NCBI RefSeq assembly: GCF_032444005.1
Contig: NC_091283.1
Coordinates: 167,586,001-167,650,000 of the forward strand
Length of the DNA stretch: 64,000 nt
Direction: 5' to 3'
From: Ranitomeya imitator
Lineage: Eukaryota
Shown: in pieces, positions 513-4,518 of the stretch
How the letters are laid out: the number at the start of each line of letters is the position of its first letter
How positions within the stretch are numbered: position 1 is the stretch's first letter
Made by a program: the position numbers and the translations under genes
The notes under the pieces: model-generated
Told to the model about the DNA's origin: nothing
What the model saw: only the letters and a program-made list of their open reading frames with translations
Databases searched by the model: none

Positions 513-3500
513 CTGGTGGCACCTGTCGGGTGGTGTCGGCTCATCGCTGTTGTAACAGGAACCGTATCGAGGAGCGATCGCAGACAGTGCAGTGCTCCTG
601 CCTGCCGGGAAAAGTGGCCGGGACGACCCGGGACAAACCATCATGTGTGGATGGTAAGTCGGGTAGTTACCCCAGGGGATGGGTGCAATGTATACAGCAA
701 TATACTGTCCCCTATATAACGCTCATCACTGCTCCACTTCTCTGGGTGAACCCGTCACATTATAGTATTTTAGATCTCGTCTCCCTGGGATAGTTAATGG
801 CATGTAAAAGCCAATGGACTGGCGCCCCCTAATGGATAATTTAGAATGAATTTTTAGAATTATCAGTCTAAGGAGGAAGATGGGTTACCATTTAAGGGAA
901 CAGTCAGGGCAAAAACAGATATACTATATTATGCCTAAAGTGCGGCCCAAGGAGCGGGACATGTCACAGGGGTCCTCGCTTTGGCGTTTCGTGACCCCTT
1001 GGGCTTTGCGCCAAGCATAACACAGTGTATTCGTTTGTTCATAGAGTTATGATGTATTTTTTGACAAATGGGACCAGTGAGTGGAACATGAAAAATGGAG
1101 GTGGACATGTTTCATGGCATGATGTATACCTAGCCTATGGAGATGTGGAACAGTTGTCCAGGAATAGAAAAACATGGCCGCCAGCCCTGTCTACAGCATG
1201 TGTGTGGTATTGCAGTTCAGTGCCATTCATTACAGTAGAGCTGTACTGCAAGACCAGACACAGCCCAAGGACCGGGACGGGGGGCCGATTCTGGGAAGAT
1301 AAGCAGATAATTGCACCTATAACTCTGCGATCATATCAACAGCTTCCATCGTGATGGGGAAATGGTGGTGTGACATGGAGCCTTGTCTGCAGGAAGAGGA
1401 ATGCCAAACCCTTCCCGATAACTCCGGCTGGATCTGTTTCCAAGGAGGCCGTATTAAGACCACCAAGGTTAGACCACCATAATAATATACAGGAAGCTAC
1501 TGCTGCCCCCTGCTGGGGCCAATTCGTGAAATCTCTACACTTTAGTCTTGAATAGAACCAAGAGATCGTTACCAGAATCTGGAGCCCCCCAAAGTATTCA
1601 GAACGCTGAGATTTAACCCTGTGTAAGGGGTTAATTGGATATCACTCAGCTTTTCCACATGCCACACCAACACTTACCTCTACTGTTACATCAGGGCCTG
1701 TGTTATCCTGATGGAGGTGTACGGGGTTAATTAGATGCGACGTGCCCATAACATGAGCTAGGGAAATTCATTTTACGTAGGAGATCAGATACTGGCTGTG
1801 ATTATTTGGTGCCGACAACATTAACACCTAAGGCTGGAGGTCTCATTCTGTCATTTCAGCGGTCTCCTGTCTGTAGGTGTAATAAACAGGGAAATAAAAA
1901 GGACTAACGAGGCTTTAAGAAGATTCACTGCACCCATGGCGATGATATGCGCTCCAGATGTAGAGCTTCACTTTATGTCTAGATCTGTCCTCTATAGAAG
2001 CAAACAAAATGATTCACCTCCATGGGAAATATAGTTTAACAGTAGAATCAACAACTTTCTGCTGTTTGCAATAAACCAAAGATCGATGTAAGCAGCTGAA
2101 CAGGAGTAGAGAAATTGGTGTCAGTCGATATCGCAGGACCAGAGGGTCACGTCGGTGATCTGTGGCCCGTGGACAGGAGCCTTGCGGTCCTCCTATTGGC
2201 CAGCATCTGCGGCTCCTCTTTATTAGATGGCCAGGCAGTATGGCATCAATGCAGTGTGACGCACGTGACATTACGCTGGGTCGGCTAAGTAAAAGAAGAG
2301 CCGCATATGTTGGCTGGTCAGAAGCAGCTCTAAGGGCCCCTATCTGAAGGCCACACTGACTTGGCAGATGGAACATCTCTTGCAAATTAATTCACATCAT
2401 CGATAAGTGATTTTTCCTAATTCTCCTGTAAATGCCACTTTTACTTATTAGTGTCAGAATTGTTCACCCCCTTCATGAGCAGAAGTCTGAGCACCTTATC
2501 CTGCTCCATACATCACCCTACCCATCATGTAGGATTACATCCCAGGGCGAGAAGGAAGTACAAAACCAGGAGACCATACCTAGGTCCCACCCTATTGTCA
2601 TTTATGTAGATTGCCAAATTAGCTAAATATTTCAAATACCCCCATAACCTACATGCATGGCCGCCTCATCTAGCCTTCTGTGAAGTCCCATCTAGGGGTC
2701 AAGAGACCCGAATCCTGCCAATATACACTGCTCAAAAAAAATAAAGGGAACACTAAAATCCCACATCCTAGATATCACTGACTAAAATATTCCAGTTGTA
2801 AATCTTTATTCACTACATAGTGGAATGCGTTGAGAACAATAAAACATAAAAATTACCAGTGTAAATCAAAATTAATATCTCATAGAGGTCTGGAGTTGGA
2901 ATGATGCTCAAAATCAAACTACAGGCTGATCCAACTTCGGTGGAAATGCCCAAGACAAGGAAATGATGCTCAGTAGTGTGTGTGGCCTCCACGTGCCTGT
3001 ATAATCTCCCTACAATGCCTGGGCATGCTCCTGATGACGCGGCAGATGGTCTCCTGAGGGATCTCCTCCCAGAACTGGACTAAAGCATCCACCAACTCCT
3101 GGACAGTCTGTGGTGCAGCGTGACGTTGGTGGATGGAGCAAGACGTGATGTCCCAGATGTGTTCAATCGGATTCAGGTCTGGGGAACGGATGGGCCAGTC
3201 TATAGCTTCAATGCCTTCATCTTGCAGGAATTGCTGACACACTCCAGCCATGAGGTCTGGCATTGTCCTGCATTAGGAGGAACCCAGGGCCAACCGCACC
3301 AGCATATGGTCTCACAAGGGGTCTGAGGATCTCATCTCAGTACCTAATGGCAGTCAGGCTACCTCTGGCGAGCATATGGAGGGCTGTGCGGCCCTCCAAA
3401 GAAATGCCACCCCACACCATTACTGACCCACTGCCAAACTGGTCATGCTGAAGGATGTTGCAGGCAGCAGATTGCTCTCCACGGCGTCTCCAGACTCGGT

Positions 3501-4518
3501 CACATGTGCTCAGTGTGAACCTGCTTTCATCTGTGAAGAGCACAGGGCGCCAGTGGCAAATTTGCCAATCCTGGTGTTCTGTGGCAAATGCCAAGCGTCC
3601 TGCACGGTGTTGGGCTGTGGGCACATCCCTCATCTGTGGACGTCGGGCCCTCAGACCATCCTCATGGAGTCGGTTTCTAACAGTTTGTGCAGACACATGC
3701 ACATTTGTGGCCTGCTGGAGGTCATTTTGCAGGGCTCTGGCAGTGCTCCTCTTGTTCCTCCCTGCACAAAGGCTGAGGTAGCGGTTCTGCTGCTGGGTTG
3801 TTGCTATGGACCCCTCCACGTCTCCTGGTGTACTGGCCTGTCTCCTGGTAGCACCTCCAGCCTCTGGCCACTACGCTGACAGACACAGCAAACCTTGTTT
3901 CCACAGCACGCATTGATGTGCCATCCTGGATGAGCTGCACTACCTGAGTCATTTGTGTGGGTTTAGAGTCCGTCTCATGCTACCACGAGTGTGAAAGCAC
4001 AACCAACATTCAGAAGTGACCAAAACATCAGCCAGAAAGCATTGGTACTGAGATGTGGTCTGTGGTCCCCACCTGCAGAACCACTCCCTTATTGAGGGTG
4101 TCTTGATAATTGCCAATAATTTCCATCTGTTGTCTATTCCATTTGCACAACAGCATGTGAAGTTGTCAATCAGTGTTGCTTCCTAAATGGACAGTTTGAT
4201 TTCACAGACGTTTGATTTACTTGGAGTTATATTCTGTTGTTTAAGTGTTCCCTTTATTTTTTGAGCAGTGTATGAAGGTCCCATAGATGGCTTCCCATGG
4301 CTGCATTAGTACTTACCCGTCCCTGTGCCATTCCTCGTCAGCATGAAAGCCGCATGTGAGCAGTCGCCAGCCACAGACCGGTATATGTGCCCAGAAGGCT
4401 AAGGCTGCAGACAATGGCCACACGCTGTCCACCACTGCTATCGGACATGTGCAGTAGTACTAGCCAGTTACACACAGCATTGTCTGCTTTGTCTTTTCAG
4501 ATTCACCCTCGCTACTGA
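513..4518 (+). CDS. TAFA1: TAFA (FAM19A) chemokine-like family member, TAFA1-like; last three coding exons, 5' exons lie upstream of the window
   Basis: Exons 513-653 (141 nt, [46 protein letters not shown]), 1343-1467 (125 nt, [42 protein letters not shown]) and 4501-4518 (IHPRY*). All introns are GT-AG with matching phases. The TAFA cysteine pattern is intact. AATAAA at 4636-4641. Family is certain; one-to-one TAFA1 orthology is not. Confidence 0.9.
2726..4270 (-). mobile_element. Tc1-like DD34E DNA transposon, decayed transposase, in the last TAFA intron
   Basis: TA flanks at 2724-2725 and 4271-4272. ~28-bp TIRs CACTGCTCAAAAAAA(A)TAAAGGGAACACT. Transposase is split over three frames (3722-3952, 3337-3819, 2970-3263) with VLFTDESRF and [13 protein letters not shown] motifs. 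Confidence 0.93.

Follow-up and report, generated by a model that had tools for sequence, protein, structure and literature searches.

Is the TAFA1-like gene at the beginning of this stretch of the Ranitomeya imitator genome simply the TAFA1 (FAM19A1) of the frog in an unusual place, or is it an additional member of the TAFA family? The stretch, referred to here as the window, consists of the 64,000 nucleotides from 167,586,001 to 167,650,000 of contig NC_091283.1 (assembly GCF_032444005.1). An earlier sequence-only reading of it had proposed an extra TAFA1-type paralog, lying beside TIMM17B, kept in amphibians and lost in mammals. We conclude that the window gene is very probably a distinct, ancient paralog of TAFA1 that is constrained, expressed and has been located beside TIMM17B since at least the bony-vertebrate ancestor, and we propose the name TAFA1L for it.

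The part of TAFA1L inside the window is formed by its last three coding exons, namely two larger ones, A and B, and a very short terminal coding piece (Table 1). Exon A, in the frame 515-652, encodes 46 residues that start with GGTCRVV and end with PSCVD, and exon B encodes 41 residues from 1345; the split codon g/ct at their junction is alanine, so that CVD-A-SIV is restored. Both exons are recognised by the Pfam TAFA profile PF12020 (gathering cut-off 25 bits): exon A with E 5e-20 and 72 bits over profile positions 1-46, exon B with E 6.5e-18 and 65 bits over positions 48-89, and the full-length Ranitomeya imitator model P0361 with 147 bits over positions 1-90. The cysteine spacing of exons A and B together is exactly C-X7-CC-X13-C-X-C-X14-C-X11-C-X4-C-X5-C-X10-C, with ten cysteines as in TAFA1-4, and this is the formula given for the TAFA domain by Khalaj et al. 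2020 (PMC7480106). The three exons with a full TAFA cysteine pattern that had been claimed from the sequence alone are therefore real, as are the introns of 689 bp and 3.0 kb, which measure 689 and 3033 bases in spliced contigs. The splice sites read, in order, AG/CT, G/GTAAGT, AG/CT, AAG/GTTAGA and, after a strong pyrimidine tract, AG/AT; all of them are of the usual kind, although the donor GTTAGA after exon B is rather weak.

No signal-peptide or pro-region exon was found in window bases 1-512, and the gene thus starts upstream of the window. Full-length comparisons used the database models P0361 and P0004, both of which contain the three exon translations exactly; in P0361 these occupy residues 113-158 (exon A), 160-200 (exon B) and 201-205 (IHPRY). 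In a GenBank protein from Ranitomeya imitator (P0007), the intronic frame 5′ of exon A recurs over 28 residues. The terminal motif IHPR[Y/H/F] is also found in the frog, newt, caecilian, lizard and echidna orthologs.

Table 1. Features located in the window, with TAFA1L first and the neighbouring genes and mobile elements after it.
Feature	Position	Strand	Remarks
TAFA1L coding exon A	513..653	+	GGTC...CVD; 6 of 10 cysteines, among them the CC pair; both ends in phase 1
TAFA1L intron 1	654..1342	+	689 bases, GT..AG
TAFA1L coding exon B	1343..1467	+	(A)SIVMGKWWC...RIKTTK; 4 cysteines
TAFA1L intron 2	1468..4500	+	3033 bases, GT..AG
TAFA1L terminal coding piece	4501..4518	+	IHPRY, stop codon at 4516-4518; the same exon runs on as 3′ untranslated region
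TAFA1L 3′ untranslated region, approximate extent	4519..5382	+	contig overhang beyond 4700
TIMM17-type gene, core exons	12281..13442	-	Tim17 motifs; Pfam Tim17 E 8e-17 on 12915-13046; convergent with TAFA1L
PQBP1-like exons	24593..26830	+	WW domain split over two exons; motifs PPNWY and YYWN...WLSP
Decayed Tc1/mariner-like transposon in TAFA1L intron 2	2720..4275	-	HTH_Tnp_Tc3_2 E 1e-19 and DDE_3 E 2e-5, in minus-strand open reading frames
Three long overlapping open reading frames between TIMM17B and PQBP1	19300..23097	+	LAP2alpha-like domain, reverse transcriptase, weak tyrosine-recombinase match
LINE-like (long interspersed nuclear element) endonuclease and reverse transcriptase	40534..42450	-	in a region of strong GC skew (40-44 kb)
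Reverse-transcriptase open reading frame	47919..49934	+	671 residues

The same species has a second TAFA1-type gene. In Ranitomeya imitator, canonical TAFA-1 is represented by P0342 and P0347 on a 206-Mb record, and TAFA1L by P0361, annotated as “uncharacterized protein,” on an 854-Mb record (clusters at 90% identity). The two proteins are identical at 69 of 87 core residues (79%), while the canonical protein of this frog is identical to that of the mouse at all 87 (100%). The window gene does not have the near-invariant canonical TAFA1 states CCNKNR, IVIGKWW and GNKIKTTR. Furthermore, Engystomops, Leptodactylus, Mixophyes, Pelodytes, Lissotriton, Rhinatrema, Microcaecilia, Pogona, the bichirs and the gar have both a canonical TAFA1 and a TAFA1L. 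The proposal of an additional TAFA1-type paralog is thereby supported; the gene is not the only TAFA1 in its genome. An initial guess from sequence motifs that it was TAFA3-like was discarded, as the database sequences are of the TAFA1 type.

To follow transcription, contigs of four public runs (X1, X2, X6 and X7) were aligned to positions 440-4700. Both splice junctions predicted from the sequence, 653/1343 (689 bases skipped) and 1467/4501 (3033 bases skipped), each GT..AG, are seen in spliced contigs of X1, X2 and X6; the raw joint positions, 652/653 to 1342/1343 and 1465-1467 to 4499-4501, are exact after correction for the cut offset. The spliced contig of X1 has 869 letters, and the contigs of X1 and X2 show zero mismatches. 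At the 5′ side the spliced contigs start to align exactly at 513, with that of X1 extending 180 letters further, onto an exon outside the window. At the 3′ side they match 4499-4700 without mismatch and then overhang by 223 (X1) and 682 (X2) letters, which indicates a long 3′ untranslated region; AATAAA signals lie 3′ of the stop codon at 4636, 4930, 5113 and 5422. The sole unspliced piece is an X7 contig that covers 1312-1550. In favour of an RNA source are the spliced contigs themselves, which lack the introns and have no intronic depth beside them. TAFA1L is transcribed and spliced as predicted.

Two further observations concern transcript forms. Read through without splicing, the exon B frame (1468-1482) continues as VRPP and then a stop, and similar intron-retaining tails are found in several database models, among them those from Pristimantis, Pelodytes and Pogona. 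At the other end of the gene, RefSeq predicts two 5′ forms in hyloid frogs (P0361, P0362, P0009 and P0358 versus P0367 and P0360): the long one is extended at its N-terminus by some 60 proline-rich residues before a hydrophobic, signal-like stretch, and the short one begins immediately ahead of this stretch. In the ortholog models the hydrophobic stretch precedes KHNVQ.

The protein is strongly constrained. We estimated the ratio of non-synonymous to synonymous substitution rates (dN/dS) from counts made separately for exons A and B, 87 codons in all, and then summed. The comparison of the window with the spadefoot toad Spea gave 32.7 synonymous and 6.3 non-synonymous differences (dS about 1.0, dN 0.03, dN/dS 0.03), and those with lizard, echidna and bowfin gave dN/dS values of 0.08-0.11; dS is saturated in these comparisons. 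Hyla, Engystomops, Lithobates, Leptodactylus and the dendrobatids all have one and the same mature protein. The low dN/dS, coupled with a mature protein that does not change across neobatrachian frog families, shows that TAFA1L is functional, and it is under strong purifying selection.

On this basis, two other accounts of the window gene can be weighed. That it is the frog TAFA1 ortholog, moved next to TIMM17B and diverged there, would agree with the RefSeq name “chemokine-like protein TAFA-1” that the gene carries in many species, and with the TAFA1 marks [15 protein letters not shown] and IHPRx, which are present in it. However, a canonical TAFA1 lies on a different record in the same species, Ranitomeya imitator included, and the TIMM17B-linked position is common to bowfin, lizard and echidna. 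As the separate canonical record in Ranitomeya imitator makes TAFA1L an extra copy, a translocated TAFA1 is excluded there, and we give this account practically no credence. The other account, of a decaying and non-functional copy, that is, a transcribed pseudogene, draws on the rate of the gene, which is about 5 times that of TAFA1 (core identity between frog and bichir is 84% for TAFA1L and 97% for TAFA1), on its loss in several lineages and on the weak donor of exon B. Against this stand the intact reading frame and all ten cysteines of the window gene, the dN/dS of 0.03-0.11 (at saturated dS), the identity of the mature protein across frog families, and the spliced contigs in three of the four runs, the lone unspliced contig of the fourth having a depth of only 2.3. 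We consider decay highly improbable, and in frogs it is contradicted by these observations.

The distribution of TAFA1L is considerably wider than the amphibians. Protein searches were made with exon A alone, with the newt homolog and with a profile of 14 members (alignment A1); they covered annotated proteins and agreed with one another, and the statements below on presence and absence refer to the matches listed. The exon A query was the stop-free segment 440-790, of which only residues 26-71 (exon A) were scored, and the open stretch of exon B has 59 residues. On the TAFA1L profile, full-length members score 233-270 bits and canonical TAFA1 at most 225; the frog orthologs P0004, P0009 and P0005, in which the mature part equals the window exon translations, score 262-263 bits. 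Full-length TAFA1L was found in a wide range of anuran families, in a newt and two caecilians, in numerous squamates (both lizards and snakes), and in the echidna, a bichir and the bowfin, while the spotted-gar sequence P0235 is partial and has a lower profile score, with TAFA1L sequence states. All 56 TAFA1L-type sequences that we fetched fall in the anurans, newt, caecilians, squamates, echidna, bichir, gar and bowfin. The family-wide states are CCN-[R/H]-N, IV-[T/M/A]-GKWW and the TTK ending (R-[V/I]-[K/R]-[T/M]-T-K), all of which the window gene has (alignment A1).

The sequence-only reading thus needs correction in several respects, chiefly over the taxonomic range. Retention in amphibians holds for frogs, newt and caecilians, and extends to squamates, bichir, gar, bowfin and a monotreme. 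The two substitutions that had been singled out as distinctive, R for E in TCxV (giving TCRV) and the CFQGGR tail, are present in frogs but are frog-specific, and do not mark the whole TAFA1L family. Finally, the loss in mammals stands only in so far as no therian copy was found among annotated proteins: the echidna (Tachyglossus aculeatus) has an intact TAFA1L with all ten cysteines (L003:10001-10740), located between a CDK7-like kinase gene and Tim17. Its introns measure about 80-150 bases, and start and stop codon are only 740 bases apart. A mammalian one-to-one ortholog therefore exists, adjacent to Tim17. In the strict sense this is one of the findings that the sequence-only reading had named as its own refutation, and the mammalian loss is at most therian.

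The genomic address of TAFA1L is also conserved. The order of the window, with TAFA on the plus and Tim17 on the minus strand, recurs in four ortholog loci (L002-L005), so the tail-to-tail arrangement with TIMM17B, read from the window alone, is found again in Spea, echidna, the lizard Zootoca and bowfin. In Spea the order is kinase, TAFA, Tim17, a 193-residue gene and an ESSS/NDUFB11-type gene; in the echidna and in Zootoca it is kinase, TAFA, Tim17; and in the bowfin (L005) it is a PRA1-domain gene, TAFA, Tim17, a WW-domain gene and a GPKOW-type gene. This layout, shared by spadefoot toad, lizard, echidna and bowfin, dates the adjacency to TIMM17B at least to the common ancestor of ray-finned and lobe-finned vertebrates. 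In the loci of five relatives, order and sizes are unchanged for those coding exons that were located, the short tail exon being located only in the bichir; with its intron positions kept, TAFA1L is not a retrogene.

The gene is also small. From end to end TAFA1L spans 0.74 kb in the echidna, 4.5 kb in Spea, 8.5 kb in Zootoca, 9.6 kb in the bowfin and 61 kb in the bichir, against about 337 kb for canonical TAFA1 in Xenopus tropicalis and about 690 kb in the catshark. The description of the gene as compact is therefore apt for the whole gene in these relatives in comparison with the giant canonical TAFA1; in the window, with the 5′ exon outside it, the final two introns are the only part for which compactness is measurable.

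The kinase gene upstream of TAFA1L in the spadefoot toad (L002:4940-7817), echidna (left end of L003) and lizard (left end of L004) is closest, among solved structures, to CDK7. An earlier guess of PIM2 was rejected, as a kinase of the CDK7 type is indicated both by its exon sequences and by its matches in the PDB. Its first exons presumably read like CDK20, a gene that in human maps to 9q22 and not to the X chromosome. In therians a breakpoint may lie exactly at the former site of TAFA1L.

For the phylogeny we ran IQ-TREE on the 87-column core with 55 rows, using as outgroups sequences named TAFA-2, TAFA-3 and TAFA-4 in their sources, including a lamprey sequence. TAFA1 and TAFA1L together are separated from TAFA2-4 with support of 100/95 (starred), and the canonical TAFA1 of bony vertebrates forms a clade with 94/88. 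A clade of TAFA1L and the sharks is equally likely in the approximately unbiased (AU) test (p-AU 0.55). The frog-only AU test is void, since frog, chicken and mouse do not differ in their canonical rows.

Several points weigh against an ancient and separate TAFA1L. The branch with TAFA1L as one of its sides has support of 79/91 and is not starred, the shark and skate genes have no resolved place in the 87-column tree, and an amphibian-only clade of both gene types, at 14.5 log-likelihood units worse, is not rejected (p-AU 0.13); in addition, many canonical rows are identical, which weakens the AU tests. The R in CCNRN and the TTK ending are shared by sharks or by TAFA2-4, and for this reason these states are probably ancestral and were changed in the canonical TAFA1 of bony vertebrates. 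TAFA1L was not found in therians, birds, turtles, crocodilians, teleosts, the coelacanth or cartilaginous fishes (annotated proteins, among the matches listed), and for Xenopus tropicalis and Rhinophrynus dorsalis the listed matches among annotated proteins hold only canonical TAFA1; pelobatoid and neobatrachian frogs, in contrast, carry the two genes together. The pipoid case may be a loss or a gap in annotation, and all these absences are leads, not proofs. In the bichir, where TAFA1L spans 61 kb, there are zero neighbours within 10 kb and synteny is not readable. The assignment of the four runs to “RNA” is a guess made by software, with tissue and library coded or absent, and a sequence search of the PDB gave zero matches to TAFA1L among solved structures. 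Taken by itself the tree is weak; what carries the argument for a separate gene of ancient origin is the coexistence of both genes in many lineages together with the conserved locus.

For the origin of the duplication, we put at even chances that TAFA1L is an ohnolog of TAFA1 from the second round of whole-genome duplication (2R), duplicated with its neighbours on the proto-chromosome behind human 3p14 and Xp11.23. Human TAFA1 maps to 3p14.1, next to TAFA4 and ARL6IP5/PRAF3, the last a paralog of PRAF2, which maps to Xp11.23; the pairs MITF/TFE3, FOXP1/FOXP3 and CACNA1D/CACNA1F likewise link the human 3p14 and Xp11 regions. The TAFA1L block has genes of the TIMM17B, PQBP1, NDUFB11, GPKOW and PRAF2 types, which are Xp11 genes in human, a PRA1-family gene is directly upstream of TAFA1L in the bowfin, and the TAFA1/TAFA1L duplication is at least as old as the bony vertebrates. 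Against a 2R origin, no cartilaginous-fish TAFA1L was found among the listed matches to annotated proteins, the shark and skate genes have a canonical N-terminus and giant size, and the tree, in which TAFA1L can equally well join the sharks, gives the duplication no date with respect to the split between sharks and bony vertebrates. The ohnolog origin suggested in the sequence-only reading is consequently plausible but was not confirmed, given the 79/91 branch, the unplaced sharks and an Xp11/3p14 paralogy that is presumed. A small-scale duplication of TAFA1 in the bony-vertebrate stem, segmental or tandem and then moved, and unrelated to 2R, seems to us rather unlikely. It would fit the finding of TAFA1L only in bony vertebrates (again among the listed matches to annotated proteins) and the high core identity of TAFA1L and TAFA1 within the bichir (94%) and within the gar (91%). 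However, high similarity is to be expected of a gene as slow to change as TAFA1; the preserved intron positions show that a retrocopy is not involved; and the surrounding neighbours, presumed to be paralogous, would favour duplication of a block. Tentatively, and with somewhat less than even confidence, we extend the 2R reading into a fuller account: TAFA1L as the 2R ohnolog of the Xp11 paralogon and a sixth ancestral TAFA subfamily of jawed vertebrates, which would have partners specific to it and would have disappeared separately in therians, in archosaurs and turtles, in teleosts and in pipoid frogs, with the therian loss at the break that parted the CDK7-like (CDK20-type) kinase gene from TIMM17B.

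TAFA1L is the gene of a small neurokine, rich in cysteines and presumably secreted, and what it does can be approached through its relatives. FAM19A1-A4, but not FAM19A5, which is without the CC pair, become joined by disulfide bonds to the neurexin cysteine loop during secretion (PMC7480106). TAFA1L shares with these neurexin ligands the CC pair and all the other cysteines, a set absent from the non-binding FAM19A5, and since the CC pair is kept TAFA1L most likely acts like FAM19A1-A4. By analogy, its signal peptide would be cleaved and its ten-cysteine TAFA domain would then fold, secretion being presumed; it would form disulfide-linked complexes with the neurexin cysteine loop in the secretory pathway, would in this way change the glycan and heparan-sulfate state of neurexin, and might possibly also serve as a soluble ligand. 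Secretion, neuronal expression and neurexin binding are thus all inferred from the known members. The frog-specific charge changes (E replaced by R behind the first cysteine, K by Q and N by D) could alter the choice of partner.

The closest relative is TAFA1 itself, with which TAFA1L shares the Pfam domain, the ten-cysteine spacing, the exon plan including the tiny terminal IHPRx exon, and the motifs [10 protein letters not shown] and LPDNSGW. They differ in that TAFA1L is compact and beside TIMM17B, whereas the canonical gene is a giant of 337-690 kb elsewhere in the genome, and in the pro-region, which reads HYQY...LPVISGG in TAFA1L and LHRP...EGG in TAFA1. There is also a parallel in FAM19A5L/tafa5l, a TAFA5 paralog of fish that is absent from mammals and has been explained by 1R/2R (the first and second rounds of genome duplication) and loss (bioRxiv 10.1101/2020.08.11.245738). 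Like TAFA1L, it is a TAFA paralog retained in some non-mammalian vertebrates, outside the mammalian five-gene set; unlike TAFA1L, it belongs to the TAFA5 branch, without the CC pair. TAFA1L, of the TAFA1 branch, has in addition persisted in tetrapods, a monotreme among them.

The remaining features of the window are a second neighbour and several mobile elements. Pfam gave no score to the 29-residue WW piece of the PQBP1-like gene. The Tc1-like element takes up about 1.55 kb, or half of TAFA1L intron 2; summed contig depth over approximately 2585-4300 ranges from hundreds to tens of thousands, with many variants, in all four runs. Such deep and variant-rich cover, together with open reading frames for a Tc1-type transposase, identifies this segment as a high-copy repeat. 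The reading frames between TIMM17B and PQBP1 have the make-up of a DIRS-like retroelement, the two frames further downstream are likewise of retroelement type, and the 671-residue reverse-transcriptase frame stands between runs of N (47301-47435, 47711-47912 and 50136-50325).

In reviews and in the neurexin-ligand study (PMC7480106), TAFA/FAM19A is treated as a family of five genes, TAFA1-5. Our literature searches found no description of TAFA1L as a separate family member, and in RefSeq and UniProt it goes under the names TAFA-1, FAM19A1-like and “uncharacterized protein.” We therefore regard TAFA1L as a previously unrecognised sixth member of the known TAFA family, present since at least the bony-vertebrate ancestor. 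Annotation pipelines merge it with TAFA1, and “TAFA1” in expression or single-cell data from frogs, salamanders and lizards can mean either of two genes; counts of the TAFA family and inferences on its ancestral function likewise need a TAFA1L branch. The finding opens no new kind of biology. It does provide a natural experiment, in which a compact and fast-evolving TAFA1L, kept in a monotreme and not found in therians (among the annotated proteins matched), can be set against an almost frozen giant TAFA1, and this contrast could help to sort the shared from the dispensable functions of TAFA1.

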